The notes under the pieces: generated by a model
Databases searched by the model: none
What the model saw: only the letters and a program-made list of their open reading frames with translations
What the model was told of the DNA's origin: nothing
Made by a program: the position numbers and the translations under genes
Shown here: positions 1-49,014 of the stretch, piece by piece
Numbering within the stretch: position 1 is the stretch's first letter
Layout: every line of letters starts with the position of its first letter
Source: Malacoraja senta
Lineage: Eukaryota
DNA length: 64,000 bases
Reading direction: 5' to 3'
Assembly (NCBI GenBank): GCA_038087875.1
Contig: CM075978.1
Location: 179,986,001-180,050,000, forward strand

Positions 1-84
1 AATCTGACGATGACGAAAGAGATTTTGGCGTAAAAGCAATAATTCCACAAACATTGTTTAATGTTGTGAACACAAATTATAGTT

Positions 85-310
85 TAGTTTAGATATACAG
101 CGGGGAAACAGGCCCTTCGGCCCACCGGGTCCGCGCCGACCAGCGATCCCCGCATATTAACACTATCCTACACCCACTTGGAACAATTTTTACATTTACT
201 AAGCCAATTAACCTACAAACATTTACGTGTTTGGAGTGTGGGAGGAAACCGAGGATCTCGGAGAAACCCCACACAGGTCACGGGGACAACGTACAATCTC
301 CGTACAGAGT
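85..310 (-). mobile_element. Elasmobranch HE1-like SINE fragment
   Basis: Recognised from memory as HE1/V-SINE body with CR1-type tail (gggcctgtttccc...) ending in (ctaaa)n on the minus strand. Confidence 0.65.
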
Positions 311-589
311 TTGTAACTTTACATTTGTGTCCTGCTCAGATTACTTTAACGGAAATGTAAACGTTTAAGAGAGGAGGATGTTGTATTATAATATTTTGCA
401 TAATTGTTGTTGTGGCATACAATTTAAGCACCACGCACTTGGCGGCTGGGCACTGACGTCATGTGAGCAGAGAGTGCAGAAGCCATTCAATGTGAACCAC
501 GACCACAAAATGCCGTTTCGATTCCTTTTCTTTCGTCTTCGCAACCACAACTCATAATATGGATAGGCGACTGGTTGGGTCAGGACCAT

Positions 590-980
590 TCTTCAGACTG
601 ATAATAGTAGGGAAGAAACCTTGAAGAGAGGTGGGGGCGGGACAAAACCAGGCAAATGATATGTGGATACGGGTGAAGGAGTCAGTGTATGTGTTATCTC
701 CTTACCTCACTACCTTTTCTCTATTGATGTGTGGCATTTATCCAGTCATCTGCCAATTACCTCCCACTCTCTTCATCTGTATCCAACTACCACGTGCCTC
801 CCCAATCCTTCTTCCAGCTCCACCGCACCACCACCGCTACTATCAATCTGAAGATAGGTCCCGACCCGCAACATCGCATACCCACGTTCTGCTGAGATGC
901 TCCCTGGTCCACTGAGTTACTCAAGCACCATATGTCTCTCTTTGTAAACCAGCATCTGCAGTCCCATGTATCTACAACGT
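590..980 (+). mobile_element. Penelope-derived 3' fragment
   Basis: tctgaagatagg...cccgacccg...ctgagttactc...cagcatctgcagt tail, repeated many times in the window. Confidence 0.55.
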
Positions 981-1959
981 TTTAACAGTCTCTGAAATAT
1001 AAGCCTTTGCGTTCTGATGTAAATATGAGCAATATGCGGCAAGTGCGGAGAATGTTGATTATCTTGTCGCGTTGAATATAAAACGTTACACAGACCAATA
1101 CTCTAGTTTGTACCAAATTCATTCTGCTGACAAAAGCTGTGAATCACTTTTATTTGGGAAATTGATTCATTTGAATGTGATTCTGCAGGGTCGGGGATAT
1201 CGATATTCAGAAGCTCGATTCATAGGTTTTCATTCCCAGCATCAATACGTTTTCTGCCGCTTCAACTGTTCTTTTAAAAAAACTAAAGTTCAATCATTCA
1301 ATGTTGACATCTGATGCGTCTGAACTGGAACATGTGCAATTGAAAATTACATTTTCAACAACAAATTAGTTGGTACGTTTAGGGAGATGTTGAAATAGCT
1401 GACGTAGTGGTGGCGTAGCTGGAAGAGTTGCTTCCTCACAGCGTTAGAGACTCGGGTTCGATCCGAACCCAGCACAGATAAATGTTCCACTGATTGGTGC
1501 AACACGCTTGAGGCGACTAATTGTGTTTTGGGAAGCCAGGGTGTGGAGTGTGGAGAAGGTTACAAATATATCAAGAAGCAACGGTTAGTGGTAGAAACAA
1601 ATATTTTAATATTTTCATTATTATTTTAGGAGTATTCTCAATACCATCTCGAAACATACGTTAATTCAGGTAGCAAAATAATTATGGAGACCCAAGGAAC
1701 TGTGGCTGCTGGAATCTTGAGCGAAACGCAAAGTGCTAGAGTATCTCAGCAAGCAGTTAGCATCAGTGGAGGGAATAGATAGCGACGTTTTGGATGGGGA
1801 CATTTCTCACTCACTCCTTCCCACCTAACTCACCCCTCTCAAACCACTTTCCCCGGCAACTGTTGGAGTTACTGCAACTCCTCAATCACTTGCAACAAGG
1901 AACTCAGCAGCCATTACAGGCGAGAAAGCCTTTTGCATTTGTTGTACGAGATGTGGCCT

Positions 1960-2660
1960 CTTTAACATCGGTGACACCAAGCGTAGGTAATAGTTTCGCC
2001 AAAGCCGGCTGGAGGTCCCAGTTGCGTTCTAATTTCGCTCCCCCTCCTTGAATGTCCTTACCACCTCCGTTACCAGAGCGAGGCCACTTGCAATGGAACA
2101 GCGGCACATATTCCGCTTGGGTGACTTACAATCCAACTGTATGAATATTGAATTGTCCAATTTAATGTGTTACCTAACTACCAGATCTCTTTCTCCTGTA
2201 CACCCCTCTCCCAATTCCTTGCGCTCTCATCTCTCCCACAATCTCCCAATACCCTAGACCCATAGTCCTTCCCTAACGCGTACACACAACCCCATCCCCT
2301 AGTCGAATTTCCTTCCTCTTACCCCATCCCCTATCACCCATAATCCCACCCTCTGCCTTTACATTTCGCCCCACCCTCCTTCTTTCCTGACACACTTTTA
2401 TCTCATTTTCAACGCTAGCTGCTGTCACTATCAAGATCTATCAGCCAATAACCCCCACCCACACTCACCAATAGTCACACATCACTTCCCAGTCTTTGTC
2501 CCACCTCCAACTCTCTTTTCCTACTCTATCCCCCCCCCACCTTTGTACCCCACTCATCTCTCTGATGAAGGGTCCGACCGGAAACAGCGTCCAGCCATTC
2601 TCTCCACAGATGTTACATGCCCCGCTGCGTCCCTCTAGCTCTTGGTGTTTTGCTCGACAT
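1960..2660 (+). mobile_element. Penelope-like element fragment (GIY-YIG C-terminus and tail)
   Basis: EQRHIFRLGDLQSNCMNIELS resembles EEQHLLLRLGSLHPSGMNIDFS at 63.2 kb. Confidence 0.6.
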
Positions 2661-3419
2661 CTTTAGCAGCTGCAGTTTATCTCAAATTGCCATGATGCAT
2701 GTGCACCGACACCTGAGAATTGCGAAAGAAGGCTAAAGTAGTGGCATTTAAAAAAGTTTAATAAATGGCGAAGTGCATACGAAGATACATATACTTTTGC
2801 ACGTATCTCGTGGTTCATGCGTTATGTGTATATATACGCTCAGCTTCAGTTTGATTTTTGTTTCGAACAGATCTATGCAAAATAGTTTAAAAAAATAGAA
2901 CGAGTGGAACTAATTAGACTGTCTTAAAGATTCAAGTCACAGTGGAGTTAAGAAACAGTGCAACAGAAAATAACGCTTAGATTCAACCTTCAGAGTGACC
3001 ATTAAAACGTGTGCGTGTTGTTTATCAACTTTTGTTATGCAACGCCCAGTATAGTGTTGCAATTAACCTATATATTTGAAATTTGAACTGCAGATCTGTA
3101 CTGTTGTAACAAGCTGCGGATAGATTAAGTTACAAGACACTTAGAAGTTGACAAAGTAATCCCCGAATAATTTTAAAATTGGTATAGCCGCGCGGCAGAA
3201 TATCGTAAAACAAAAAGGTCTATTTTTCTGCTTGGATGCACAGAATGACATGCATTTGGGGATGACGAGGAGCTTCACTGTTTGAGGTGTGAATTGTAAT
3301 TTCAGTCCTCCGACATGTTGATGATTGCTGTTTTTTTTCATTTTCCATTGGATCGGTATTGTTAATGTGTCTCCACCATAAATCAAAGTCGAGCGAGAAA
3401 TCGGAAACCGTGCCACTGA

Positions 3420-3512
3420 TTATTCGATTCTCGTTTCTCTCCGCGCATATTCTTGCTCGTTTTGGATTTCTCCTGAGGCGCTCAATCCGCCGTCGTCAGC
3501 AACTTGTTTTAT
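3420..3512 (-). CDS. Candidate terminal cytoplasmic exon of gene A: IKQVADDGGLSASGEIQNEQEYARRETRIE*
   Basis: Strong acceptor tttccttttcag; start ttttcag-ATAAAACAAG matches the gene B terminal exon ttttcag-GTAAAACAAG; phase 0. Needs a phase 1-to-0 exon upstream (candidate 6257-6178). Confidence 0.45.
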   Translation of the reverse strand: MKQVADDGGLSASGEIQNEQEYARRETRIE

Positions 3513-4889
3513 CTGAAAAGGAAACGCTTATAAATATCGACAACGATCTATTTTGTTACATTTTGGTTTGTTTCCAATGTACATTTTAAACACAGGAGAA
3601 CAATGTTGATGGCGAAACAAGGACAATGTCTGACCAAACATAGTCCCTTAAAAACCGCCGAATTACGGATAGTTGACGTTTTCTTTCCGAGCAACTAATC
3701 TGAAACCTGGATATGTTTCCTCTGCATTAAAATAGAAAAATTCATTAGACCAGTCAGCACCCTCTGGGAAGGAGCACCATTCAGATTTTCTAGGCTGCGT
3801 CGCTTCATCAGTTTAGTTGTTATTCGGAGAAAAGGCGAGGGAGCGACGTGTAGTACAAATTGCAAATTGCATTTGTAGAATGATTTAAAATGGCATCGAT
3901 ATCAGCACTTTACGGTTCTGCATTGTGTTATGTGCATTGTTAATGATGAGCTGGTGGGTTTGCCCTACCTATTATAACTTAATAAATAGTGTATGAACAA
4001 CTGAACTAGTATTATATAAAAAATGAATAAAGGAATTTCTGGAATTGCACATTAGGTTTAGCTTGTATTTGATACAATTAACCCTATAGAAATATTATGG
4101 GGTCCACCGAGAATATGCGCAGGAGGTAAACCTTCTGGTGTTGACGACCTTGTCAGCATCTTAAAGCTATTCACAGATTCTAAACATAACGGTTTCGACG
4201 AAGGTACCCAATTGTCATCTGCGTTTTTTTGCCGAATGATCTTCCCAATTTTATTTTCTCTCCCCATAGCCACATATACTGATTTCAATATTTATCAATA
4301 CACTACTCGACAGATGCGTCCGATCGTTCATTACTTCGAAGAAATAGCTTTGACTGTTTGCAACAATGCATATTTCCACTTATGCCTCTTCCCGAAATCA
4401 ATATATACACTTACCAACTTTCCATGGCCAACGATCCTTTTGTATTTACCTTGAAACGGACGATATTTAATTAATAACAATGGTTAAAATCTTCACTCTA
4501 TTTACCATTTCTGATCGTTTAATATTTTTTATAATGAACATAAAACATAATATGAAATTAGATTTTATTCGGGCAGAGCAATGAATTTTGGCAAAGAGTA
4601 GACGGCTACATAGATGCTCCGTGAATTTTGCTGGCATCGCTAACTGACAGAATGAAAGTGGTGAATTTTCTGGCATTTTCAATCTCCCTGGCATTTTGCA
4701 AACTCTTCGGTGCAAATGTCTAAACAACGCTTAAAAGAAAATCAATAGATTGTCGAGCTAAATTGATAATCCGCTGGTATTTAAGTCATGGGATTGAACC
4801 ATCCCACCATGCAGTACCGTTCTATTCTTTTGGTTTATATGATCCATTCTGACTATTAACAAAGAAGCTCCAACGTACGACATACGCTC

Positions 4890-5710
4890 ATCCAATTCAA
4901 AACATTACATAGACTATATTATTCCAAAACTAAATTAAATAAAATCTTTCCTAATGTTTCACCAATCTGTGATAAATGTCTATGTCAAGAAGCTACCATA
5001 GCGCATTCTTTTGTTTTTTGTACAAAAATCCAAAATTTTTGGTATGAAATATTTGATATTTTCTCAAAATGAATTAAAAATAAAACTGGTACCAAACCAG
5101 AATGGATCATTTTTTGGAATATCGGAAGGTATCCCTGAATTAAACGTGTATCAGAAGAACTTATTCAATTACGGGCTAATAATGGGAAAAAGGCTCATAC
5201 TTAAATTCTGGAAAAATGCGCCCACACCAACAATAAAAATGTGGACATCAAATATGTTGGAAACATTACATCTGGAAGAGATGAGATTCCTCTTAGCAGG
5301 GAAAGCAGACCAATTCAAAAAGACGTGGTCTACGTTTTTGGACCTATTACAAGCATGAGGTGCAATAGTAATTTAAAATATAAATAAATAAAGAAATGGT
5401 ATCAGGACCTGGTAATGGGAGGTAAAACAATAAAAACAGACTTGGTCGGTGGTTCCCTTTCTGCGATTGTTCCTACTTTCTTTTTCTTTCTTTTCTAGGA
5501 TCTACTTTCTTACTTTACTTCCTTCTCTAACTTCTTTTCTAAGGGGCTTTCTTTTCACAACACTCTCTTGCACCTCACGACTCTTGCACACTTTCTTTAC
5601 TTTTCTTACTTCTATCTTTCTCTTAAAGCTCAAAAAAATGAAGCTGTATAAAAAATGTATTAAGATATAAGTGTTGTGTATTACTGTAATTTACCGTACT
5701 TCTAATAAAA
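4890..5710 (+). mobile_element. L1-clade LINE 3' fragment
   Basis: Homologous to the 3' end of the L1 at 36.0-36.8 kb (CDKC, LILKFWKNAPTPT, 3' UTR, aataaaaataa). Confidence 0.85.
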
Positions 5711-6177
5711 ATAATTTAATTTTTTTTTTTTTTTTAAACAAAGAAGTTCCGAGTTCCCATAGAAGACAAGCACTGATCTTTCTCAGTCCCATGGATCTGT
5801 GTTACCAAAATATGTCATCCCTGAAGCGTCTGCTCCGTGGTATAACAGTAATATTAATGTATAGAAAATATTATTTTTTCCATCTTGCCCTTTCAAAAGG
5901 TAAGGGTCCCTTATAACTTTAGGGTATAATGTCTACGTTTACTTCCAGTTATTGAGGGACAGATTTGAAAAAGGCAAATGCCGTGGGTTGGAATCCAACT
6001 GAGTCCTAACCGGGTAAAACACCGTTTGTCTCTAATGGACTTTAAACGACCACTTCATGTGCTACAAATGCTCTGCCGTTTCATAATCTCTTGTATTTTG
6101 TCGATACCTGGACTGTAAATAAAACGTTTAAATCATAGATCAAATTAGCGAAGTATCGTATCAGAATTTACTCCTAC

Positions 6178-6257
6178 CTTCACAATTATAAACCGAGGTA
6201 TTCCGATTGTGGCCATCATAAATAAAACATTAACACGCCGTTTTGTCTGACACTGAA
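6178..6257 (-). CDS. Candidate cytoplasmic exon of gene A (phase 1 to 0): FQCQTKRRVNVLFMMATIGIPRFIIVK
   Basis: Acceptor ttgtcttgcag, donor AAG|GTAGGA, 80 nt and open; no homology to gene B, so it may be chance. Confidence 0.25.
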
Positions 6258-6855
6258 CTGCAAGACAATGCGGATTATAGCATTGAGTAACTGGGGATTC
6301 TGGGTCATATTACTAAACCATAACTTCTCGAATAAGCTTTGGGAATTTTTCGCCATACGGGATGAATTTCAAGATACATTAACTGGCGATAATCCCCTGC
6401 GATTATGTAAAGATTTGTTGAAAGGAATTGTGCGTGGTATTAGGTGGATAGAAATGGCTTTCATTATCTGAGATTGTTTTTAGCTTTTGCCTTTCCCAAA
6501 TTATGCTGGAAATGTGAATTCAAGAACTGCCTTCGGTTTTGTTTGCGGTCGTTTCACAGGGCACGGGAATCCACAGCAAGGCGCATTCTCGAAATTGTAT
6601 GAATCGGTCATTTGGATTCCAATCATAATATATCCCTGAAAGTCGAGATTTCTCACTGTACATTACCACAAAACTAGTTTCCTTGACTTTCGTATGCATC
6701 CTTAAATTATATTTATGAGCTTAGTTACCATTTGCGTGATTTTAATAGCGTGGAACCACGGAGCAGCAATATGACCAAACAATTCAATTACTTATCAGTG
6801 AAGTCGACAGGGACCTCAGTGAATACGAAATATAAATTATAAGCATAATACTTAC

Positions 6856-6951
6856 AGTTATTCTTCAGTTTGCAGAATCCGACAATGACAGTCATAATGA
6901 ACAAAAATGCGATTACAACCGCCGAACGGACAGAACTCCAGATGACTGTTT
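6856..6951 (-). CDS. Gene A exon 4, transmembrane ETVIWSSVRSAVVIAFLFIMTVIVGFCKLKNN
   Basis: 96 nt, acceptor aacttgcag, donor CT|GTAAGT, phase 1 in and out; hydrophobic stretch with Arg, then basic stop-transfer residues. Confidence 0.85.
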
Positions 6952-9900
6952 CTGCAAGTTTAGAATGGCAGATACTGAATTCTACTTTGAGCCGACCATT
7001 GTTTGTTTTAAAGAATCTCTTTAGAATTTGGTGATTTGCTATCGCTCATAATTACATGCAAAAAACATTCTGCTTGAATCTGATATTAGAAACAACGTTG
7101 TCCCGAAGAGTGAGAATGAATAAATTGCCATCTGTACCGGATGCCGTAAATTACTTTAAGCGAGTTTAATTTCAGACGAATAAGTAGGGGGGAGGAGGAT
7201 GGGGGTGGAGTGGATATATTTCTTCACTTTTAATTGGAATGCAGCAGCACACAAAGCTCCAACGTCTTAGGGAAGTGCTGATTTGGTTGAGGTCCAAGGC
7301 AAATCTTCTTTCCCTTATGTACAGTATCAAGGTGTACTTTTTCCAGACACGCCTGCAGATCTTAAAGATAATGAGCTACGGTCATTATCATATGGTAAAT
7401 ACGCTATAGTAAGTCCCAGGGCGCCCTGTCCTCTAAAAAACGTTCAGTGATTGGCAATAAATCGCTCCCCATCATCGCCCCCCACATGCAGTTATTATAT
7501 TGAGTGAAACAGCACGGAAACCGGCCCTTGGCCCAGCACGTCTATGCCGATCAAAATACCTCACAATACCAGAATAGGAGTAATTGCTGAAACCCACCAT
7601 ACGGCGCTTGACCAGAAACAAGATATGAAACAGTTCCCTGCTTTAAATCCAAACAGGTTGGAAGGGACGACATTTTTTCTACACAGGATCACAAATCGGG
7701 ATGAATCCACAATGATAGGAATATGAATTCAATAAAGAGCTGCAAGTGGTTGTGTGTGGAGCAAAAATTAAAACCGCCCCCTCTAATTCGTTACCACAAT
7801 TTGAAAACAACAAATTTTGCGCGAATTTTCTGGAGAACTGAGTCGATACTATTTACGAGGATAGTATTATTTGCATTCCAATTTACATGATTTATCATCC
7901 ACAAACACAGAATTGAATCGTAGGTTGCAAAACGTCATAGTGTTTTTAAGTCATACCTTTGAAAACGACGTGGAATTTGCGACTTTGGTGGGAGATATGA
8001 GACACCAGATAAACGTAAATGTTTCCATTCGGCTCCGACTGTGTCACGGGCAATGAAGTAGAAACTGCGTACAGCCCTTCAGTATTTTTCTGTTTAACGT
8101 TATTAGTCTCAGTTCTAACTGCGGTACCATGTTTATGCCATACAAGAGTTCACTCGGGTGAAACTCGGCCGTTTCACAGACGTGAAGGGATAAAGGGAAT
8201 AAAGGCAGTAGTTGTGTGGGAAATAACTGCAGATGCTGGTTTAAACCGAAGATAGACACAAAATGCTGGAGTAACTCAGAGGGACAGGCAACATCTCTGG
8301 ATAGAAGGAATGGATGACATTTCGGGCTGTGACCCTTCTTCAGACAGAGAGAAAGAAGTAGCTTCCGAGCCTATTGCCCCCTGGCTTGTGAGGGGAACTT
8401 TCTGACAATTAGCTGAATTCTAGAACTTTTTTAAAAGAGTCTCCAAAATGAAAGGGATGCACCAATTTTGGGCAGTTCCTAGACATCTGTCAGCAAATTC
8501 AGTAGCAGACACTAAACAATGGATGTAGTATGAGGCTACGGGAGAATGCGTAGTAACGAGCAGACAATGCAAAATATTTCGAGCGAAAATGAATGCCATC
8601 CCTTCACATTTCGACAGTTACCTGAAATAGCGGGTCATTCTGGGACCCGTTAGAGACAGTGTTTACGATGATAGGAATGGCATTTGTCATCCTTTTAAAA
8701 CAAACGTTGTCAATATCAACACACTCAGATGTCAATAATAAGTTATAAAATTATACGGTGTTTCAAGTCATACCTTGGTCAGGTTTGCGAAGGGCGTGCG
8801 TGGCAATGGCGGGTCTTTGGAGGGAGATGTGCATCACCAGACAAATGTAAATATTCCCGTTGGCCTCCGACTGCGTCATGGGTATTGAACTGGAAGCCGT
8901 GTACAGCCCTTCACTATTTTTCTGTTTAATGGTATCAGCCTTAGCTGTAACAGCAACGCTATTTTTATACCATATAACGGTTAGATCACCCGGGTGAAAC
9001 TCGGCCGTTTTACAGACAAGCGTTGTAGCTGCAGATGAATTGCTCTCGGATATCCAGTTAAACTTCAGTGGAGTTGGAAGGGCTGTGGGGCAGAGTGCGA
9101 AAATATCATATTACTGGGATGAAATTAAGCAAAGACAGTAGGAGCATCTGGTTTAGAAATCCACATATTTTACCCGATCCCTTCAAGACAGAAGTTAACG
9201 AATTATTGATATCTGTTACCTCATACAGCGGAGCGCAATAACCGCAGCGGAAAGTTAATTTTGTTTCAACTCAACAAGCGTTCAATGACATGAAATGTGG
9301 AATCTTTTGGAGGTACAATTTATATTGATTTATGCTGGATCGTATTTGAAGGTGTGATGATCTCTTGATTGAAAGCTATTGTTACCTGTTTTGAAAGACA
9401 TCTTATTTGCTATATTTTTAAAATATATTTTCGGCATAATAATATCCATTGAACGTCGTAAATTCAATAAAACGAGCATAAAATTATATGGTTAGCAGTT
9501 TTCACATAATTTCATTGGGCCTTTCTCTCTCTCTCACAAATCGGAACTCTAATATAGAAATATAAATCTTGTGCAATATTATCGGCTATTCTGCTCACTT
9601 TTGTCACTCACCACATACTGTTAGTTCTGACCCTCTTCCTTCTCCCCTAATTTCCCCCTGACGCATGACTACACAGCGATAGTTTCCCGAATCCTGGTAG
9701 GTCGTGTTCAGCAAATCAAAATATCCGCCTGCTCTATTTTTGAAGGTGAATCGCTTTCTGCCATCAGCGTCGCTTTGTATATATTCATTCTCCCCCTGTT
9801 TTCGCCAACGCACTTCGATTCCCGAACTGTCATACGTAAGTGGGATTATGCAGTGAAAGGTGACGTTTGCTCCCTTCAATATAACCTTTCGTTCTGGAAT

Positions 9901-10164
9901 TTGGGTAACGTGGATCGCAGTTTCTTCAGCAGCTGTTGGAAAAACGTTTAAGATTTGGTTAATTATATTCAATGTAGTACCAACTCTTTAGATAATACAT
10001 TGGCATGAAAAACAAAACTAACAAAGACAAATAGAACAAATAGTTTTCACCAGTTAAGCCAGGAATAGTTTGGGATATTTTGGCATTTAGATAAGTCTAT
10101 ACGAGATCGTTCAAGTACCTGTGCAAATAATCACGGAGAGAGACAGAACCAGGACCAGAAACAT
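6856..10164 (-). CDS. Gene A: VJ-C1-TM Ig-superfamily receptor, activating type (TM Arg). Join 10164-10119, 9932-9612, 9082-8774, 6951-6856; cytoplasmic exons unresolved
   Basis: Four exons with GT-AG boundaries, all phase 1, splice into an open frame: signal peptide, V domain, C1 domain and hydrophobic TM containing Arg. Confidence 0.9.
7957..8185 (-). pseudogene. Relic C1-set exon in gene A intron 3
   Basis: Translates to VCETAEFHPSEL / VWHKHG...KQKNTEGLYAVSTSLPVTQSEPNGNIYVYLVSHIS with a frameshift, second Cys changed to Tyr and 5' part missing; keeps donor AG|GTATGA. Confidence 0.85.
8215..8345 (-). mobile_element. Penelope-type tail fragment
   Basis: aaatgctggagtaactcag...cccttcttcagac. 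Confidence 0.6.
8774..9082 (-). CDS. Gene A exon 3, Ig C1-set domain
   Basis: 309 nt, acceptor cccacag, donor AG|GTATGA; [32 protein letters not shown] match C1-set motifs. Confidence 0.93.
9612..9932 (-). CDS. Gene A exon 2, Ig V-set domain with joined J-like strand
   Basis: 321 nt, acceptor ttccaacag, donor TG|GTGAGT; B-strand Cys (TFHC), Trp (VRWRK), [17 protein letters not shown]. Confidence 0.95.
10119..10164 (-). CDS. Gene A exon 1, signal peptide MFLVLVLSLSVIICT
   Basis: ATG at 10164, 46 nt, donor AG|GTACTT, phase 1; hydrophobic leader; 3 differences from the gene B leader. Confidence 0.9.
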
Positions 10165-10313: not shown

Positions 10314-10959
10314 ACATAAGTAAGAGTGCAGCATGTATAGGTAACAAAATAATGTTTCGGGGGTGTTTTTTGCAGGGCTAAAGGAGGTTTTTAAAAATAA
10401 TTGTAGAATTTAGATCTTAGATTGCAATTAAACTAGGGAATTATCAGAATTATCAGAGTTGGGGAATCCCTAAATGCCAGAGATCAGGGCGAGATTACAA
10501 AGAGAGTGATGGACAATTTGCGCCGATAATTACAAATCGTGCAGTAAATTAATCAAGGGATTCCTGTTTTACTGGACATCGTTGTGATTGATCTCGCATG
10601 GGGTGATATATTATTTTGCCATAATCGCAAATATATCCAAGTACAACAACAGATGGAAATGACAAGTCAGAATAGTAGAACTAAAAGGTAAAAGAACGTC
10701 ATAGCCGAATGCATCAGGGCCATTAAAGCAGAGGGAGAATCGGTGTTGGGATCAAGATTCATATTTTGTTGCTGTTGGCACATATATTGTTCACTGCTCA
10801 TCTAGATGTCAAATTTAACACCGTGTAGAGTCTACTTCAGTTTTCGACAGCTATCGGGAAGAATCGCATTTAGCGGGAATCCAGTTAGCGAACATAAAGT
10901 GGTTTTATTTGCATAGTTTTAGATTTTAATTGCGTAGATCGTCATGGAATGCGAGAATA

Positions 10960-11250
10960 TCTGTGAGCCCATCAATATAACCACTCTCTCCGGAATTTGA
11001 ATCACGTGGTTTCTTCGGCACCTGCTGCAAAAGCGTACCCAATTTGATTGTTAATATTCAGCGTGGAATGGTACACTCCAGATACATTTTGGCATGATTC
11101 ATTAAACAGCAACATATGGAAAAAAATTCTTCGCGCGGTTGAACCAGTAATTGTTCTGAGTATTCTGGCATTTAAAATAGTTTCAAAGAAAATATAAGGA
11201 TACCTGTATAAAAAAATCATCGAGAGAGACAGGAGCTGGAAGAGAAACAT
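10960..11250 (-). pseudogene. Relic leader exon plus truncated V exon of a third paralogue
   Basis: Leader-like MFLFQLLSLSMIFLY (11250-11204, 47 nt, wrong phase); then GAEE..HVIQIPERVVILMG with a 7-nt deletion and stop relative to the functional V exon. Confidence 0.8.
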
Positions 11251-12244: not shown

Positions 12245-15200
12245 ATTGCCCGGGGAAATGACAATGAAGCGGCGAAGAGTGCACCTGGTGTCGAGACAAT
12301 AATCTTTCTTGCAATTTCAGCAAGACAAAGGATATAGTAGTTGGCGTCAGGAAGCGAATCGGGTTGCATTGGCGGCGCTGAAGTAGAGATGGTTGAAAGC
12401 TTCAAATTCCTAGGGGTAAATATCACCAACAACTTGTCCTGGACCATCCATATTGAAGTAATGACTAAGAAAGCACACCAACGCCTCTACTTCTTTAGAA
12501 GGCTGAGGAAGTTCAACAAGTCCCCAAAACCTTTCACCAACTTCTGCAGATGTGCGGTAGAATATATGTTATCGGGATGCATCACAGCATGGTTTGCCAA
12601 GACCTCCATCCAAGAAAGCAAGAAATTGCAGAGAATTGTGGTCGCAGCATAGACCATCACACAAAGCAACCTCCCTTCTGACTCTATTTACACCTCACGC
12701 TGCTTCCGGAAGGCTATCAGCATAATCAAGGACGAGTCGCTGCACGGCCAGTCCCACTTTTCCCTTCTCCCAAGGGGAAAAAAGGCATAGAAGTGTGAAA
12801 ACGTACAGGGACAGTTCTTCCCAGCTGTTATCAAGCAACTGAACCATCCTACCAACAACTAGAGAGCAGTCCTGAACTATTTTACTTCGGATTCACGTGA
12901 GTGAGTACGTGAAGAACCCCGCCAGTGCGCCTGCGCGTCATTACGTCAGACGCCTTGACGCAAACGGACGTGAGGAGCAGAGCTCCTCCAGTGGTTTGTA
13001 GTCTTTCAACTACAAGGTAAGTAAAAACTTTTTTCATGTTTTCCAGGTCCGTTTACTGTGGGTCTGTGGGGATTTTCCCACAGACGCCATGGGAAAAAAC
13101 GGGCAGGGGGAAGAGGCGAGCGACTCAGCCGACAGAAAGTCGGGAAAGTCGGGAGTCCGCGGTTAGAGACCAACCGCCTCGAAACCCCGGTACAGTCGCC
13201 AGCGGTGAGCATAGCGACTGTGGACCTGGGGCTGGTGAAAACACAGTCAGCGCCTGTCGGGCAAAAGGCGACGTTTTAATCCCAACGGCCCACGGAGGGA
13301 GTCCCAGGCAATGGAAGTAGCTCCAGGGCTAGATACTGCTTTCGAGCGTATTGCCCAAATAGAAAGCCTTTTACATAGGCTGTTGGAGCAAAGTTCACTC
13401 AGGGAGGAGTGTACTAAAATCCAAGCTGCTGGAAGCAGCTCAACAGCTCCTGGTACAGGGCTAGATACTGCTTTCGAGCGTGTTGCCCAAATAGAAAGCC
13501 TTTTACATAGGCTGCTGGAGCAAAGTTCACTCAGGTGAAATCCAAGCTGCTAGAAGCAGCTCAACAGCACCTGGTACAGGGCTGATGGAATGCACCCTCA
13601 GGGATGAGGAGCGTGCTACGGGTCATGAGATTTCAGACCCCGACTCTGACGGTGAGGCTGTACAAGGCGATGAATGGCAGCTGCCAGATGTTCCACCCCT
13701 GGCAGTAGGATTCACTGCCCCGTCAGGGTCAGGAGAGCCATTAGGAGAAGAACTGGCATCCTTAAATAAATTACTTGGTTTCCCATCAGCTGGAACAGCA
13801 GGAGATGGATGAGACTGCAAGAAAGCAGGACACCCCAAGTAACTGTGGGTTGCTGAAAGCAGCAGCAGTGAACCAAATTATCTGGAATCAGTTGGAGAGA
13901 ATATTAAAGCTGCTGGGTTCTGGAATAACTGCTTTTACCAGAATAGCAGATAACAGCCAAGAGATGACGAAGTTGCATCAGGAAGCACTGGGGTTGCTAT
14001 GCAGCACCCACTTCGAGATCAATTATCTGAGGAAGGTGCTATACGGCCTACTATGAATCCGAAATTTGCAGCACTCTGCAAACCAAGTAATATACAATTA
14101 CCCAACTTACTCTTTGGAGAGGATCTCGGGAGACGTATTAAAGAGTTGGAAGATGAAGCGAAAACAGGATTGATGAAAACATCAATGGTTGCAAAGTCTG
14201 TAAAGAGGAAGTATCCTTTCAGACGTCATACGGATCCTGGACCAGGACCAAGTCGCTCATCAACGCAGGGACGTAGCTGGCGGCCTGCAGCGGGAGTAAG
14301 AACCAGTGGTGGTGCTTCCGGGAGAATCCAGGGATCTCAGAGTACTCAAATGACTCAAGAGGTAGGTGGACCTGGTTCTCATGGGAACATACTAACTGGA
14401 TTAAGTCCAAAAGTTGGAGGCAGATTACGTCTCTTCTATAACAATTGGAAGAAGATTACTTCAGATGTGGTAATTCTGAATAATATACAAGGATTTCGAA
14501 TTGAATTCAATCCAAATTATGATTTGCCTGTCCAGCATGTTCCGAGCAGAACGCTCCACTTTGCAAAGTAATGGAGGTTCAAGCTGCACTTCAAAACCCT
14601 ATATATAAAAGGTGTTATTGAAGAATCAGTCTACCAAATTCACCAATTTGGGTCAAATATATTCCCTCGATCAAAAAAGGATGGAGGATGTAGGATTATT
14701 ATAGACTTGACAAGTCTGAATCCTTTTGTTCAGTGTCTGTTCACTTGGAAGATATGAAGTATCTTAAATGTACATGGATGAACCAGTTAGGGCAAAGCTC
14801 TGCCTAATGGGTTAACGTCCGCTCCCAGAATATTCATAAAATTGTTAAAATCAATTCTGGGGTTGCTGAGAGCCAGGGGCATGTACTAATGGCATACCTG
14901 GATGATGTCCTGATTATAGGAAGGACAAAACAGTCAACAGAAGCATCTGTTGCAGTTATGAAATCAAACTTTTGAAAGTTTGGGGGTTTCTAAATTCATC
15001 CAAAGAAATCAAGGTTAAAAACATGTACCTTGTTTGATTATTTGGGGTTCACAATTGATTCAGCCCAAATGAAAATTACTTTGCCCAGTGAAAAAAGGGT
15101 GGAGTTGATTAAAGATTGCAGTAATCTGTTAAACGAGCAAAAACCTTTAATCAGACAGGTGGCTCGGGTACTGGGAAAATTAGTAGATTCCCAGCAGTCC

Positions 15201-17825
15201 AGTATGGACCATTACATTATCAACAGCTGCAGAGAATCAAAGAACAGGCACTGAGAGTAAATGCTGGTCATTTTGATAGACCATGCAAGTAACAACAAAT
15301 GCTGTTTCTAATCTGCAGTGGTGGATTCTACATGTCTCAAGCAGTTCAGGCAAAGTGCTGATTGAACAACCTTCCATGATATTACAAACTGATGCCAGTG
15401 CACTAGGATGGGGTGCAACTGACTTAACATCTAGCTGCGGAGGCAGATGGAACCAGGAAGAGTTATTGTTACTGCAGACATGGGGAATTCCCTATTTGGA
15501 GCTTTTAGGAGGTTTCTATGGACTCCAAGCTTATTGTTCTAACACAAGTTCAAATTAATAAACACAACAGCAGTTGCCTATATTAATGATATGGGTGGAA
15601 TTAAGTCGGTGTCATGTGACAAAATGGTTAAATCAACTTTGGTCTTGGTGCATTGAAAAGAACATTTGGATTTCAGCTATCTATCTACCAGGTAGAATGA
15701 ACACGATAGCAGACACCAGGTCACGAAAGTTCCATGATAATAAAGAATGGATGTTGAATCAAGAGGTATTCAATGATATAGTAATCAGATTTGGAATGCC
15801 CGACTGACTTAAATCATCAGCTATCGAGATATGTCTCATGGAAACCAGATCCAGGACCAGTGGCGATTGATGCTTTCTCGCTACATTGGGGTGGTATGTT
15901 TTCATATATATTTCCACCTTTCTGCCTCATAAGCCAATGTTTGCTTAAAATCAGGCAAGATGCTGATTCAAGGGTATTGGTAGTACCAGATTGGCCTACA
16001 CAGCCATGGTATCCGTTGATATTAGAATGAACATCACATGATGAAAGTCCCAAAAAGGAGTAATTTATTGCTGCACCTTGTAACAGGGGAACAACATCCA
16101 TTATATGATCATTTGGATTTGTTGCTTTGCAGGTTTTAAGAATGCCTTTTCTGGGACGAGGACTGTCTGAGCGTACTGTGGACATGCTTACGGCAGCCTG
16201 GAGGAAGAGCACTCAAAAACAGTACCTTTCTTATATTAAGAAATGGGAAGAGTTCTGTGTACAAAATAATGTGCAATAAAGTACTGCAGATATTTCAAAT
16301 GTTTAGAATTTCTGTCAAAAGTTTATTATGATGAAGGTCTGAGTTGTAGTGCAATTAATTCAGCCAGAAGTGCATTGTCCTCATATTTGGTTCTGGATTC
16401 AGAAAGAAACCCAGTTGGGTCACACCCAATTGTTTCCAGACTAATGAAAGGAATCTTTAATTCCAAACCACCGAAACCTAGGTACATGACAATCTGTGAT
16501 GTAAGTGTGGTACTGAAACTACTTCGTGAATGGTCATCAAGTGTGTCTTTACCTTAGGCCAAGCTCAGTATGAAAGTATTCATGCTTATGGCATGAGTGA
16601 CAGCACAACGAGTGCAAACACTTGGAAAATTACAAATAGACAGTATGGAAGTAACTGAAGATAAGGTTACATTCTATATCTATGACCTACTAAAGCAAAT
16701 TAGGCCAGGTGTGACAGGATTTAAAATTATGCTAGCAGCATATCCAAATGATCCTTGTCTCTGTATTAGGACATATTTGATACAATACATTGAGGTCACA
16801 AAGAATTTGAGAAGTACGGAAACTGGGTTGTTGATCACACACAAGAAACCACACAAGAGAGTTTCAATACAGACTATTTCCAGATGGATAAAATAAGTCT
16901 TAACAGCTGCTGGTATTAACACTTATGTTTTTATGTCTCACTCGCCGAGGGCAGCAGAGACGTCGGCGGCCAGGGCAAAAGACGTCCCCGTCGACCATAT
17001 CCTTGCAGCCGCCGGGTGGTCCAATGAGTTGATGTTTCAACATTTTTACCATCGGCCTATTGTTAATGCGGGATTGTTTGCAGAAACTATTTTAAGTTCT
17101 GTGTAAATTCCTCTGGTTTAAAGGGGATCTGATTAATTTAATTATTGAAATGAATTACTGCATTTGTGGTACAAATGTTATTATGAATGCATGATTGATT
17201 ATTTCTCGTTCCGAGTCAATCAATGCAGTGAGAAGCCGGGATTGATCTACGGCATGAAATCACAAAGCTTTAAAATCTTCACGTAGTCACTCACGTGACT
17301 CCGAAGTAAAATAGTAAGATTAAACGAGAACTTACCTAAGTTTGAAGTTTGATATTTATTTTATGAGGAGTTACGTAGGTGATTACGTGCCCGCCACGAC
17401 CCTACCCTCTATCATAAAGGTCAGATGGAAGTTGTTGTATTACTCATTTTATTATGAGACTATATTACTTCGGTTGTTGTTTTTTGTGCGCCGCTGCTTT
17501 GAAGATTGAGGCACAGGCGCACTGGTGGGGTTCTTCACGTAATCACCTACGTAACTCCTCATAAAATAAAGATCAAACTTCAAACTTAGGTAAGTTCTCG
17601 TTTAATCTTACTATTATCTACCTCATTGGAGATCCTTGGACAATCTTTGATCGGACTTTACTGGATTAATCTTGCACTAAACGTTATTCACGTTATTCCC
17701 ATTATCATGTATCCGTACACTGCTCGATTGTAATCATGTATTGTCTTTCCGCTGACTGGTTAGCACGCAACAAAAGCTTTTCACTGTACCTCAGTACAGG
17801 TGACAATAAACTAACCTAAATCTCA
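12245..17825 (+). mobile_element. Rex1/Babar-like LINE 3' fragment split by a DIRS insertion (12245-12879 plus 17614-17825)
   Basis: VEMVESFKFLGVNITNNLSW...RLYFFRRLRKF; the flanks rejoin as cctgaacta|ttatctacctcattgg; tail gtgacaataaa. Confidence 0.75.
12880..17613 (+). mobile_element. DIRS1-type tyrosine-recombinase retrotransposon, full length, ORFs degenerate
   Basis: RT YLDD (14895-14906), RNase H LQTDASALGWG, MT-like FPPF/VPDWPTQPWY, recombinase TAQRVQTL/HSPR/AGWS/FY; inverted termini and internal complementary region at about 17277-17389. Confidence 0.93.
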
Positions 17826-18799: not shown

Positions 18800-20480
18800 G
18801 CTGATCGATCTTTTCACCTCAAACCCATTCTCCCAATTCCCATAACCTTTGTGACCCTTAATAATCAAGTATATGTCAATCTATGCCTTAAAATTGTTCA
18901 TTGACGGCCTCCACAGCCTTCTGTGAAAATTAATTCCACAGATTCACTACCCTCTGATGAAAGAACTTCATCCTCATCTCCTTTCTAAAGGTATGTCCTT
19001 TTATTCTGCGGCTGCGCCCTCCATTTCTCGACTCTTCCATTAGTGGAAACATCCACTCTATCCATGCCTTTCACTATTCGGTTAGTTTCAATGAGGTCCC
19101 CTCTCATTCTTCTAAACTCCAACAAGTACAGGCAAAGTGCCATCAAACACGCATCATATGTTAACCCAATCATCCCGGGAACATGCTCATAAACCTCCTT
19201 TTGATCCTCTCCAATGCCATCAAATCCTGCCTTAGAGTCCCGGCATCATCCTCATAAATCTTCTCTGCACCATTTCCAGCTAGACAATATATTTCCTGTA
19301 ACATGGTGGCCAGAACTGAACACAGTACTCTAAAGGTGGCCTCTCCAACATCTTGTTATCTGCCAAATGACCACCCAAGTTCTATACAATACTCTAACTA
19401 ATGAAGGCCAATGTGCTGAAAGGCTTTTGGCCACGCCATCTTCCTGTGGTGCCACTTTCAAGGAACTATGTACCTGCACCATCCCTCTGCTCTACAACAC
19501 TCCCCCAAGCCCTATAATTCACTATGTAGCACCTGCCCATGTTAGTTTTCTGAAAATGTAGCAATTCACATTTCTCTGTATTAAATTCAATCAACCATTC
19601 TTCAGATAAAATGCCCAACCGATCAAGATCCTGCTGCCATTTTTGACAACCATCTTCACTATCTACAACACCACCCACTTCTGTTTCATCCACAAACTTG
19701 CTAATCATGCCATGTACGTTCTCATTCAAATCATTGATATAGATGACAAACAGCAGAGTGTCCAGCACCGATCCCTGAGGCACACCATTAGTCACGTTTC
19801 CAGTCTGAAAAGCAATCTTGCAGCATCAATATCTGCTTTCTTCCATTAAGCCAATTTGCTATCCATTCAGCGATCTCTCTTGGATTCCATGGGTTCTAAC
19901 CTTCTAGAGCAGACTACCGTGTGGAACCTTGTCGAATACCGTGCTGAAATCCATATAGACAACATCTGCAATTCTGCCCTCATCAACCTTTTTGGTCACA
20001 TCTTCAAAAAACACAATCAGATTCGTGCAACCCACGTGCAAACCATGCTGACTATCCCTAATCAGCCCTTGTCCATCTAAATGCACGAATATCTTCTCCC
20101 TCAGAGTGCCCTCTAGTAACTTTACCACCAGATGTTAATCTCACTGGCCAGTAGTACCCAGGCGTATCCCTGCAGCCATTCTTGAATCGAGGCACAACAT
20201 TTGCCACCCTCCAGTCTTCTGGTGCGTATTAAATGACGACTCATAAATCTCAGCCAGGTCACCTGCAATTTCTTCTCAAACTTCCCACACGGTTCTCGGA
20301 TATGTCTGATCAGGCCCGGGAGATTGGACGACCTTCAGACGCGGCAATACCTTCAGCACCTCCTCCAACGTAATACTGACTGCTCTCAAGAACTTCCGTT
20401 GACTTCCCCAAGTCCCCCAGTACCCATGGCTATCCTCTCGAGGAGAAATACTGGTTGAGACCTTGCCCAACATTGCCCAT
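18800..20480 (-). mobile_element. CR1 LINE ORF2 fragment
   Basis: [33 protein letters not shown]. Confidence 0.9.
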
Positions 20481-43895: not shown

Positions 43896-46800
43896 AGATA
43901 AGCTGGAGAAATCCAGTGACTGCTGTGAAAATGCAGCTGACAACTAGGGAAAGACCATGTGATGGCGTGGAAAGACAGCTGTCAGGAGGAAAAGACCCCA
44001 ACGGGGTTAGCATGGACTAGCTATCCATGACGGCTGGCTCCGTCACTGTGAATTGTGAATAGGAGTCACCCCTCATGGCAACGAAAAATTTAAAGAGGAA
44101 AATACCCCCTGAGTCTGCGAGAGAGGGGGTGGAAGTTGACTCATCGGATGACAACCCGGTAACCGACCCTTGCATGAACACGATGACGAAGAAGATAATC
44201 GGCATGGCACTTACAACATCAGCTGCAGGACAAGAACTCCAAGAGTGTCGCTGTGGCTGGTCCAAGGTAACATCGATCAGAGGCCTATAAATACATCAAG
44301 GGCGGATGAAGTGCTTGAAGGAGGTGAGGCCTGGACCTCGCATTGATCAGTATCTCCTGAGAGAAAGATCAAATCAGTCGAGTGAAGCTCAGCGGCAGGA
44401 TACAACCCAGTCCAACGAGCATCAATACCCCAGTGGCTAAGGAGAATAATTCAAGCACAACATCTGAGAACCCGGAATCCAGCCAGACGCAGCCTGCTTT
44501 GGAGAAGAAGATGCAAGGCCACAGACATCATGTGAAGTGGCCAAAGTCCAGCAGCAAGAAAGAGTGGGCAACAATCGACGCAGACCTGAGTAAGATCCTA
44601 GACGGACTTCACGGAACAGTGGAGAAGAAACTGGAGAAAATGAGTGATCTGATCTACTTCTACGGGGCAGAAAGGTTCAGAACCAAAAAGAAGGAAACAA
44701 CAACCCCTCCAAAGCTCAGAAGGCAGCGAGAAATCGAGCGCCTAATCAAAGAGAGAAGGGACCCGAGGTAATGGTGGAGGAAATCCTCACTGGAGGAAAG
44801 AGTGGGCATCAACCTCCTGCAAGCAGATCTAATGGAATGCCTGGGAAGACTACGGAGAGCAGAAACCCTCAGAATTCAACGCAAGAAGAAGGAGAGGGCA
44901 AGAACATCATTCTACAAGCATCCCTTCAGATTTGTGAAAGGACTCTTCACAAAGGAAAAGACTGGGTCACTTAAGGTGTCAAAGAGGGAATTGGAGGACC
45001 ATCTGAAATCAACGTACACAGACTACCAAAGATTTGAGCAGAGGGGGATACTTCCAGACATGCCACCCATTCCTCAACCGGAACACCAGTTGGACAACAG
45101 CCTCCCAAGGTGCAGCGAAGTCGAGAAAGCCGTAAGGAAGGCAAGGGCAGCTTCAGCTCCAGGACCAAACGGAGTTTCATAACGGCTGTACAAAAATGCT
45201 CCAAATGTTCTAAGGTTCCTATGGAAGCAAATGAAGGTAGCATGGAAAAAGCAAACCATCCCAAAAGCATGGCGAATAGCAAGGGGAGTGGTGATCCCCA
45301 AGGAAAAAGATGCCTCAAACATCGACCAATACCGGCAAATCAATCTCTTGGATGTTGAAGAGAAGATCTTCTTTAGCATTGTTGCTCAAAGGATGATAAC
45401 CTACCTGAAACAGAACAACTTGATTGACACGTCAGTACAGAAAGCTGATATACCAGGCTAGTCTGGATCCTTAGAACACACAAGCATGATATGGCATCAA
45501 ATCCAGTCAGCAAGAAGGGAATGAAGAGATCTGCACGTCTTATTCCTGGAACTAATCAATGCTTTTGGATCTGTTCCCCATTGTCTCCTCTGGACAGCCT
45601 TCGAGTTCTTCCATGTGCCAAAGAACATTGCAAACCTGGTCAAGATTTACAATTCTGTATTACAACAACAGAATAGACAACATCATGGCAATCACTGGAA
45701 GTGGGAATAATGGCAGGTTGCACCGTCTCCCCGCTAGCCTTCACCATGGCGATGGAAGTGATCATCTGAGCTTCCAAGTGGGTCGTAGGAGGAGAGCGGC
45801 TGCAGTCTGGGCAGCGGCTACCTACCATTCGCGCCTACATGGATGACATGACCACCCTGACCTCAACCATTGCATGCACCAAGCGCCTGCTGGAAAAGCT
45901 TCATGCGAAATGACATGGGACCGGTTGAAGTTGAAACCCAGCAAATCCAGGAGCATATCCATCATCAGAGGAAAAATCGTAGACAAGCGATTCCACAATG
46001 ATGAAACACCCATTCCGATGGTATCAGAGCTGTCAGTAAAGAGTTTAAGACGGTGGTACAATGCAAGCCTCAAAGACTCAGACCAGTGTGACCAACTGAG
46101 GGAAAAAAACATCAAAGGCCTTACTATCATAGACAAGACCTCGCTTCCTGGTAAGCAGAAACTGTGGTGCCTGCAGTTTGGCTTGCTCCCCCATCTGATG
46201 TGGCCTCTGACCATCTACGAGGTCCCCATCACCAAAGTCGAAAAGTTGGAGAGGACAGTCAGTTCATACATCAAGAAGTGGCTTGGACTCCCGTGTTGCC
46301 TCAGCAATATCGGCTTGTTTGGACACAGCGCTCTGGAACTGGAAGTCTCTAGCCTCATAGAAGAATACAAATGCACCAAAGTGAGGCTGGACATGATCCT
46401 GGCCGAATGTCAAGATGATGCGGTATGAGCGGCTGCTCCCAGACTGGCAACTGGGCGGAAGTGGACCCCATTGGAGGCTGTACAGCAAGCAAAATCTGCT
46501 CTCAGGCATGGAGACATTGTAGGACAGGTGCAGCAGGGAAGAGGTGGGATTGGACTCGGGACAAGTCGACCCACATGGTACAAGGCAACATCCACCCAGA
46601 GAAGAAAGCTGGTAGTTGCTGAGGCCCGTCAGCAAGAGGAGGCAGAGAGATGCGCAAAGGCAGTCCCACAGTCCAAACCGGGCGAGTGGACTACCTGGTA
46701 AAACCTGGAGCATCGTAAGCTTACCTGGAATGATCTGTGGGAAATGGGAAGAAGCTGTCTTAGCTTCATCATCAGAGCCACCTACGATGTTCTTCCCACA

Positions 46801-47727
46801 CCCAGGAAACCAACCCAGTGGCTTGGAGAAGATTCATTATGTTCTCTCTGTCAAACCCCAGCAACATTAAGGCACATCCCCACTGGCTGCAAAACCAGTC
46901 TTTCACAAGGCCGCTACACCTGGAGGCACAATCAGGTCCTGTGACAACTGGCGATTACCTTGGAAGGAAGGAGAACTACCACGAATGGCCTCCCTCCCCC
47001 AACGCCTGGTTTCTCGAACACCACCCCTTTTGGAAAGGCAGGGCAACTTCCAGGGAAGCCATTTGCAAGAAGGGAACCGATCCTCCTGGACATTGCCCGG
47101 GACAGGAAAATGCAGGCTGATCTAGACCAGAAGCTCATCTTTCCACCAGAGATCATCACAACTAATCTCAGGCCGGACCTGATCTTGTGGTCAACCTCAC
47201 CGAAGTCCCTGTACATCGTGGAGTTAACTGTGCCTTGGGAGGTTGCAGTTGGTGAAGCGCATGAACGCAAATGTCTGAAATATTCAGACTTAGCAGCCGA
47301 GGCAGAACAACGCGGCTGGCGTACCCCAGGTGCTCCCTGTAGAGGTTGGTTGTAGAGGGTTTGTAGCCATGTCAACAACCAGACTCCTGAAGGGAATGGG
47401 AGTTCGAGGACAGGCCTTCCGGCAAGCCGTCAGGTCGCTATCAGAGGCTGCGAGCGAAGCAGCAACTGGCTTGTGGCTGAAGAGGAAGGACTCGTATTGG
47501 GCTGCAAAATGACCAGCAAGAGGGGTAAAACAGAGGGGAGCGCACCTGGGACGCCAGGTGTTGCTGTTGTGCTCTCTGGGGGTGTCCTGGGCATATCAAC
47601 CAAATACCAAGGAAGGAGGGTGCCCACCTGATGATCCCAATTAAGTCTTTACCCCTACCCCCACTCAAGATATTAAGAAGGCACCAATTGTAGTAGGGAT
47701 TGCAATATCAAGTCCTATAAGCTCAAC
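43896..47727 (+). mobile_element. Hero-type non-LTR element, copy 2, near full length, degenerate ORF
   Basis: N-terminal Cys/His motif (CRCGW...IHQGRMKC), RT (AYMDDMT), CSLC...RHNQVL, RPDLILWS...ELTVPWE...KYSDL; 3' end identical in layout to copy 1. Confidence 0.88.
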
Positions 47728-48872
47728 TCCATGTCAATACTCTACCACCAATACCATGTGCTCTAATTTTGCACACTAAACTCTTGTGTGAGTCCTTGTC
47801 TTTTTGAAAGTCCAGATACACCACATCCACTCGCTCTCCCTTATCCATTCTACTTGTCATATCCTCGACAAAATCCAAAAGATTAGTCAAACATTATATC
47901 CCCTTCATAAATCCATGCTGACTTTGATCGATCCTGTCACTGCTTTCCAAATGTGCTGCTGTTACACCTTTAATAATCGACTCAAGCATCTTCCCCACTA
48001 CCTGGCATATAATTCCCCATTTTCTCTCTCTCTCCTTTCTTAAAACGTGGAGTTATGTTAGCTACCCTCCAGTCCACGGGAACGGATCCAGAGTCTATCG
48101 AACACTGGAAAATGATCACCAATGCATCCATGATTTTTAGGGCCACCTCCTTGAGTATGGGATGCAGACCATCTGGCCCTGGGAGAATAAAGAGGGAAGA
48201 TTAGACTTTATTGCCTTCCATCACAGTGAGGAATGTAGGGAATCCCCTGTGGTGGATGTATATGTTGACTTTTATGTAGTTGTGTGTCTTGTTCCTTTTT
48301 CTAGTATGGCTGTATGGTAAACCGAGTTTCACTGTACATTAATTGGTACTCGTGACCATAAAATACATTTGAAACCTTTGAAACCTTTTATCTGCCTTTA
48401 GTCCCAACAGTTTACATCACACCATTTCCTCACTAATGTGGATTCCCTTCAGTTCCTCCCTCCCGCTAGATCCTCAGTCTCCCAGTATATCTCCAGTATT
48501 TAAGAAACTTGATCAAGGCATCCTTGGGCTCACAGATATTCTCGCATTCCATGACTATCCACGCAATTAAAATCTAAAATTATGCAAATAAAACCACTAA
48601 ATGCGATTCTTCCCGATAGCTGTCGAAAGCTGAAGTAGACTCTACTCGGTGTTAAATTTGACATCTAGATGAGCAGTGGACAATATCGGTGTCAACAGCA
48701 ACAAAATCTGAATCTTGATCGCAGCACCGATTCTTCCTCTGCTTTAATGGCCCTGATGCATTCGGCTATGACGTTCTTTTACCTTTTAGTTCTACTATTC
48801 GGACTTGTCATTTCCATCTGTTGTTGTACTTGGATATAGTTGTGATGATGGCAATATATTGTATAACCCCAT

Positions 48873-49014
48873 CTTCTTCTTCTTCTTTCGTGTGGCGTGC
48901 ACAGCCTAAAGTTGTTGGACAACTTGTTCTATTTGATCTTCCGTTTGTGCACGTCGAGTTGATTGCATTAGTCGAAACAGGGCAGACCACGTGAAGGTTG
49001 CAATCTTCCACCCC
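48873..49014 (-). mobile_element. 142-bp SINE-like insertion with (GAA)n tail
   Basis: Absent from the gene A arm; flanked by gtataaccccat / gtataatcccat (11 of 12 match). Confidence 0.8.

Follow-up and report, generated by a model that had tools for sequence, protein, structure and literature searches.

Does a skate possess the adaptor-coupled half of a paired immune receptor? In vertebrate immunity, inhibitory receptors are time and again paired with activating ones, and the age of the adaptor-coupled half is not settled. The question is raised by a locus of Malacoraja senta, of which we analysed a continuous stretch of 64 000 nucleotides (hereafter, the window). A first-pass annotation had proposed that 96 bases of this window encode the membrane segment of an adaptor-coupled activating receptor (gene A), marked by an arginine in place of a residue of a second gene (gene B) whose membrane segment is uncharged. 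The best-supported reading of our analyses, to which we would give roughly an even chance (about 0.5), is that gene A, one of two inverted SIRP-like V(J)-C1 genes, encodes an activating-type, adaptor-coupled receptor.

An inverted pair of V-C1 genes

Gene A lies on the minus strand. Its leader exon (10119–10164, with the ATG at 10164, encoding MFLVLVLSLSVIICT) ends in a phase 1 GT donor and was matched by tblastn to the leader of a Leucoraja erinacea protein, P0172. It is followed by a V exon that includes a germline-joined J-like motif of 10 residues (9612–9932, an open reading frame assigned by Pfam to V-set/Ig_3), by an exon with an open frame for a constant-type immunoglobulin domain of the C1 set (8774–9082), and by a transmembrane exon reading (E)TVIWSSVRSAVVIAFLFIMTVIVGFCKLKNN (6856–6951), which is bordered by the acceptor ttgcag/AA and the donor AACT/GTAAGT. 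When the leader, V(J), C1 and transmembrane exons are joined they give an open frame of 257 residues, with AG/GT at every border and every junction in phase 1. The top PDB sequence matches of the C1 exon are immunoglobulin heavy-chain constant domains and the shark protein UrIg2, and SIRP was absent among the listed PDB sequence matches to the V and C1 exons.

The comparator, gene B, lies on the plus strand, with a V exon at 49688–50008 and a C1 exon at 50548–50856, the latter followed by an assembly gap (50924–51065). The two arms of the inverted duplication (10971–8707 versus 48525–50919) are 92–96% identical in DNA, and the ectodomains of the two genes differ at five of 107 residues in V (95% amino-acid identity between the exons) and at two of 103 in C1. 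Their membrane exons are about 58% identical by codon count. Within the duplicated arms, upstream of both genes, there are short V-exon-like remnants (HVIQIPERVVILMGSQIFSH; 10949–11008 on the minus strand and 48525–48598 on the plus strand). The 38 kb that separate the genes, together with the flanks of gene B, consist largely of retroelement or reverse-transcriptase-like open frames (12341–16900, 19466–20128, 44382–47355, 54522–55236 and 61303–61521).

Beyond the ectodomain, gene B has an uncharged transmembrane exon (52762–52876), a cytoplasmic exon encoding LTYSAV and TAYARV (56251–56349), and a last coding exon encoding LTYASV and TEYAAL (57213–57368, stop codon at 57366–57368), all on the plus strand, and the resulting four-tyrosine tail matches those of SIRP-alpha-like proteins of sawfish and rays. 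The transmembrane exon has two possible donors, A/GCAAGT at 52872 and AA/GTATTA at 52876, of which the second is favoured by ray orthologues that read ...NKSKHG. The phases of these exons do not fit directly, since the transmembrane exon leaves off in phase 1 or 2 and the one at 56251 begins in phase 0; one or more small exons must therefore intervene (52880–56250). Rays carry a mini-exon, HGDTDTADHEDL, at the position between the transmembrane and tail exons; a motif search found no mini-exon of this kind in gene A or gene B.

The intron between the C1 and transmembrane exons of gene A holds a decayed second C1-like pseudo-exon (7985–8226, minus strand) that can be read only by using two frames. 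It shares 78% DNA identity with the C1 exon of gene A, is shortened in its 5' part, is frameshifted after ...FHPSEL and has Tyr for its second Cys; it is a recent, broken copy of that exon. Splicing it in would break the frame of gene A, so a working gene has to leave it out, as presumably happens. Searches for public sequencing runs returned only two. Mapped to the window, both covered the introns continuously and without splice joints, and are thus DNA-like, possibly deriving from the sequenced animal; no indel variants were seen in them at this pseudo-exon. Separately, word depth in both DNA-like runs was very high at 8146–8342 and at 4797–5781 (up to millions, versus about 3–40 elsewhere), which identifies these intervals as high-copy interspersed repeats.

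The membrane segment and its arginine

The span singled out by the first-pass annotation (6856–6951) is exactly one exon of 96 bases, with canonical splice sites and phase 1 at both ends, and the peptide from which the annotation had argued, IWSSVRSAVVIAFLF, is encoded within it on the minus strand (6899–6943). That peptide had been aligned with a 14-residue membrane peptide of gene B (52785–52826, plus strand) such that the arginine replaced a glycine. While the peptide and the exon are real, this alignment was off by one residue. In an ungapped codon alignment, in the tblastn alignment to Heterodontus P0167 and in a MAFFT alignment of 18 family members, through all of which the motifs A-F-L and C-x-L-K-N stay in register, the arginine stands at the fourth position after the tryptophan (Trp+4), opposite a Ser in gene B and a Cys in the inhibitory relatives; at Trp+3, where a Gly is conserved, gene A has a Val, and an arginine opposite glycine requires a gap. 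The arginine codon is CGT (6926–6928, minus strand), as in Leucoraja erinacea, and one T-to-C change would suffice to convert the relatives' Cys codon, TGY, into the Arg codon CGY. No variants were found in this exon in the two DNA-like runs, which may come from the sequenced animal itself, and a PDB sequence search with the 31 residues of the exon returned no match.

The claim that the arginine lies near the outer leaflet was borne out. It is residue 8 of a 26-residue, otherwise uncharged stretch between a Glu and a Lys, and 18 uncharged residues follow it before the first cytoplasmic Lys, so that it stands 19 residues above that Lys; the cytoplasmic end itself reads K-L-K, with no acidic residue. 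The best 19-residue hydrophobic window omits the arginine, while the best 21- and 23-residue windows contain it, on both the Kyte–Doolittle and the Wimley–White scales, which agree. The arginine accordingly lies at the outer edge of the helix and may be interfacial instead of buried.

This position bears on an alternative in which gene A is a tail-less surface decoy, competing with gene B for ligand, and its interfacial arginine merely snorkels to the lipid head groups without a partner. The 18 residues that follow the arginine can nearly span a bilayer by themselves, and among Arg-bearing receptors the dependence of surface expression on FcR-gamma is weak for XFL1.7, Fc-alpha-R and OSCAR (PMC2413239). 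However, an arginine on the outer flank contradicts the positive-inside rule (PMC13107469), and the repeated gain of an arginine within a two-residue window, in several lineages and together with loss of the ITIM tail (see below), would be hard to explain if that arginine were functionless. We consider a surface decoy very improbable.

The 3' end of gene A

If gene A is an activating-type receptor, as we favour, it would be expected to lack an inhibitory tail. We found no homologues of the tail exons of gene B or of its relatives in the 6.8 kb of the window downstream of the gene A transmembrane exon (1–6855), nor in the orthologous Leucoraja erinacea locus. Three models of the end of gene A can be drawn instead, all on the minus strand. 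In the first, which is hypothetical, the transmembrane exon is read through into CKYYAYNLYFVFTEVPVDFTDK (6788–6855), a tail of 22 residues that ends at a TAA (6790–6788); an ATTAAA lies beyond this span (6746–6741), and the frame survives a 9-base deletion in Leucoraja erinacea.

The second model, equally hypothetical, uses a candidate spliced exon (6520–6635) with an acceptor AG at 6637–6636, in which the junction T+GG gives a Trp that is followed by 37 residues and a TGA (6522–6520). This exon falls in a block just downstream of the transmembrane exon (6424–6660) that is about 97% identical to Leucoraja erinacea and whose open frame is phase-compatible with the GTAAGT donor; within the candidate exon, the Leucoraja erinacea sequence lacks 6 bases, which keeps the frame, and otherwise differs by a single synonymous substitution. 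The open frame in this block may be the last coding exon of gene A. The candidate exon has no similarity to the tail of any relative; a resemblance to a stingray tail (E = 0.17) was dropped when a direct search gave it no support. In the third model, the GTAAGT donor is joined to an AG at 6589–6588, which creates a TAA across the junction. The three models extend 5–43 residues past the last membrane residue (a Cys), and none of them contains an ITIM, ITSM or ITAM.

The end of the transmembrane exon also differs between the two genes, reading GTAAGT, a strong donor, in gene A (6850–6860, minus strand) versus GCAAGT in gene B (52868–52880, plus strand). Both genes share a second possible donor, AA/GTATTA, 4 bases downstream, at the position that the ray orthologues (...NKSK/HG) appear to use, and the phases of the two donors differ (1 and 2, respectively). 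The one-base difference between GTAAGT and GCAAGT may have changed the phase of splicing and so contributed to the loss of the tail from gene A.

Conservation in a second skate

The Leucoraja erinacea locus that encodes P0172 (L001, CM054023.1) is collinear with positions 12000–378 of the window, at 89–92% identity. The repeat block at 4869–5737 is absent from the Leucoraja erinacea locus, which also has a C1-like copy of 78% identity (L001 11928–12131). The transmembrane exon (L001 13117–13212) is identical at 94 of 96 bases and keeps the Arg codon and both splice sites, although the two changes both alter the protein (Val to Ala, and Ser to Pro at the residue adjoining the arginine). Substitutions in this exon amount to 2.1%, versus 7.8% in the flanking intron, such that two differences are seen where about 7.5 would be expected from the intron rate (Poisson P about 0.02). 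Over all four exons the two skates show 30 differences in 772 bases and no indels, versus 6.9 indels expected (P = 0.001); non-coding DNA between the two differs by 5–8%, with 69 indel events in 7756 aligned bases. The deficit of indels in the exons and the low divergence of the transmembrane exon suggest that the frame of gene A, and this exon, are under some constraint.

These data are also where the main rival to our reading has to be weighed, namely that gene A does not signal from the membrane at all and is instead a duplicate in decay, or a V-C1 decoy that is secreted, with an unused membrane exon and an arginine that is merely tolerated. The annotated Leucoraja erinacea model, P0172 ('tapasin-related protein-like', 228 aa, L001 10001–11374), is in keeping with this rival, as it reads through the C1 donor, ends in GMT-stop and omits the transmembrane exon; word-index and exhaustive searches found no database protein that carries the gene A transmembrane exon. 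The pN/pS ratio between the two skates, at 1.0, could reflect decay, although it fits either diversifying pressure on an immune receptor or relaxed constraint. Decay would likewise be consistent with the frameshifted C1-like pseudo-exon in the C1–transmembrane intron, with the loss of the gene A tail exons, and with a pyrimidine tract ahead of the transmembrane exon that is visibly poorer than that of gene B. On the other hand, a gene in decay would be expected to have gathered some of the 6.9 indels that its 772 coding bases lack, and an unused membrane exon should not be less diverged than the intron around it, with its splice sites and its arginine kept. Moreover, the combination of an arginine with a short tail recurs in annotated proteins of sharks and rays. 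On balance, we judge this rival unlikely, and turn to those relatives for what they imply about an activating gene A.

A family of V-C1 proteins in cartilaginous fish

An exhaustive search with the V domain returned 167 relatives. The closest of these combine V, C1 and transmembrane parts and come from chimaera, sharks, rays and skates; automatic annotation labels them, among others, 'tyrosine-protein phosphatase non-receptor type substrate 1-like', 'signal-regulatory protein beta-1-like' or 'tapasin-related protein-like'. A literature search found no paper on this family. Of the 59 distinct relatives from sharks, rays and chimaera that have a membrane segment, 14 carry an Arg (13) or a Lys (one) at 17–21 residues above the cytoplasmic boundary. 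The distal ITIM/ITSM is absent from 13 of these 14, versus 15 of the 45 relatives with neutral segments (Fisher p = 1.1e-4, a value that ignores relatedness and so overstates independence), and the median tail is 15.5 residues long with a basic segment versus 98 with a neutral one.

The arginines are of two types. In the first, found in Scyliorhinus, Mustelus, Hypanus and Hemitrygon, the segment derives from the inhibitory one and reads W-x-x-R-C-x-x-G-G, with the Arg at Trp+3. In the second, found in sharks and chimaera (P0131, P0081, P0060, P0063, P0030 and P0180), an Arg is followed by 16 hydrophobic residues and then by D/E-H or D-Y; one of these, Chiloscyllium P0131, reads NIFR...VDH and resembles the FcR-gamma-binding NxxR module of frogs and mammals, a module that a 2014 survey did not report from cartilaginous fish (PMC4016189). 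Gene A belongs with the first type, except that it lacks the GG motif and has its Arg one residue later, at Trp+4. The short-tailed relatives of the first type (Scyliorhinus 'SIRP beta-1-like' P0171, Mustelus P0173, Hypanus P0014 and Hemitrygon P0156) are otherwise like gene A in their V-C1 architecture, in the placement of the Arg within the first third of the segment, in the lack of an ITIM and in a C-x-L-K-N-K motif, but in them the Arg replaces the Gly at Trp+3 and the GG is kept. Given these differences, gene A is likely to have gained its arginine independently of the sharks and stingrays. We tentatively suggest, at somewhat less than even odds and from sequence comparison, that one old V(J)-C1 family gained a membrane arginine on several separate occasions, each time with loss of the ITIM tail.

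Comparison with known receptor systems

The gene A/gene B pair resembles mammalian SIRP-alpha and SIRP-beta-1 in several respects: the two ectodomains are near-identical, each with a J-like strand in its V domain and a C1-set domain behind it; the inhibitory member (gene B) has four tail tyrosines in two ITIM-like pairs (ITIM/ITSM-like); and the other member (gene A) has a basic membrane residue and no inhibitory tail. In contrast, SIRP has one V and two C1-set domains, while gene A has a single intact C1 and its relatives are also V-C1, and the gene A arginine is at the top of the segment while the DAP12-binding Lys of SIRP-beta-1 is central. The link between SIRP and the skate family consists of automatic database names only.

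NKp30 has a non-rearranging V domain of VJ type, as does gene A. An identity with NKp30, suggested by the J-like motif, was ruled out by the C1 exon and by the SIRP-like tail of gene B. In NKp46, GPVI and CD89 the Arg is followed by 16 residues and then an acidic residue, while in gene A there are 18 residues, all uncharged, before a Lys. Like gene A, NKp30 (NCR3), NKp46, Fc-alpha-RI (CD89) and TCR-alpha have their Arg high in the helix (PMC13107469), but their membrane segments have no detectable sequence relationship to that of gene A.

Another parallel is the NxxR TM1 module of Xenopus XFL and mammalian LILRA, PIR-A, GPVI and OSCAR, where, as here, an N-terminal Arg occurs in the short-tailed members of a large paired family, and where NxxR is the signature of a proven FcR-gamma-binding module (PMC2413239). 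The gene A arginine does lie in the N-terminal third of its segment, but the segment reads S-S-V-R, has no Asn at position -3 and hence no NxxR, ends in K-L-K, and derives from the inhibitory type. Other members of the family, such as Chiloscyllium P0131 with its NIFR...VDH, look closer to this module than gene A does. Finally, shark UrIg and UrIg2 share with gene A a VJ exon followed by C1-set domains and a restriction to cartilaginous fish, but they have three (UrIg) and nine (UrIg2) C domains, and no activating/inhibitory pair or ITIM is mentioned for them (PMC12227049); the number of domains rules out that gene A is one of these.

The choice of adaptor

Through which adaptor would an activating gene A signal? 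The first-pass annotation had set an N-terminal transmembrane Arg, pairing with FcR-gamma or CD3-zeta, against a central Lys that pairs with DAP12. This rule is stated in a 2026 review, according to which receptors with a high-lying Arg in the segment (as in TCR-alpha, CD89, NKp30 and NKp46) assemble with the two Asp of a zeta–zeta or gamma–gamma dimer, and those with a central Lys with DxxxT/S adaptors; there are exceptions such as NKG2D, whose Arg pairs with DAP10 (PMC13107469). Gene A has, in place of the central Lys that adaptors of the DAP12/DAP10 type take, an Arg 19 residues above the cytoplasmic boundary. DNA alone does not tell which adaptor is used, but gene A fits this depth rule, which comes from mammals, and FcR-gamma or CD3-zeta would therefore be a likelier choice for it than DAP12.

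Alternatively, gene A might be coupled not to a zeta/gamma dimer but to an adaptor of the DAP12/DAP10 type, or to an unknown one of cartilaginous fish. Its mammalian namesake, SIRP-beta-1, uses DAP12. An arginine is also not exclusive to zeta/gamma pairing, as the NKG2D–DAP10 complex demonstrates (PMC13107469), gene A is without the NxxR of the FcR-gamma module (PMC2413239), and a 2014 survey, based on older data, reported no FcR-gamma in cartilaginous fish (Akula et al., 2014; PMC4016189). Two features of the family nonetheless speak for another partner: the gene A arginine is well above the centre of the segment, and the basic residue of the family is Arg in 13 of 14 cases and Lys only once, whereas DxxxT/S adaptors typically take a central Lys. 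We regard coupling to a non-zeta/gamma adaptor as distinctly improbable.

If gene A does assemble with an ITAM adaptor, its arginine would dock onto the Asp pair of a disulfide-linked dimer, which by the depth and the type of the residue would most likely be of the zeta/gamma family (CD3-zeta or FcR-gamma). Binding of a ligand to the ectodomain common to both proteins would then give an activating signal opposing that of the phosphatase-recruiting tail of gene B, and gene A would be expected to reach the cell surface poorly without its adaptor. What we retain of the original proposal is mainly its general form, an adaptor-coupled activating receptor, which is well supported by analogy, namely by the twin ectodomain, by the arginine at the top of the segment, by the lack of an inhibitory tail exon within 6.8 kb, by the preservation of the exon in a second skate, and by the association of arginine with tail loss across the family.

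Implications

To read gene A as an activating partner is in itself routine, as the pattern is an ordinary one and relatives are already publicly named SIRP-beta-1-like. What the locus offers is a clean natural pair in a skate, with a common ectodomain, one four-tyrosine tail, and one arginine-bearing membrane exon that a second species has retained, and genes A and B are thus a convenient pair for testing zeta/gamma-type assembly in cartilaginous fish. The wider meaning depends on the tentative reading given above, of repeated arginine gain and tail loss in one old family. Were this correct, and were the pairing with zeta/gamma, both adaptor-coupled paired receptors and the FcR-gamma-type membrane module would be older than the split between cartilaginous and bony fish, which would run counter to the view, reached in 2014, that the origin of FcR-gamma and its partner receptors lies with the bony fish.
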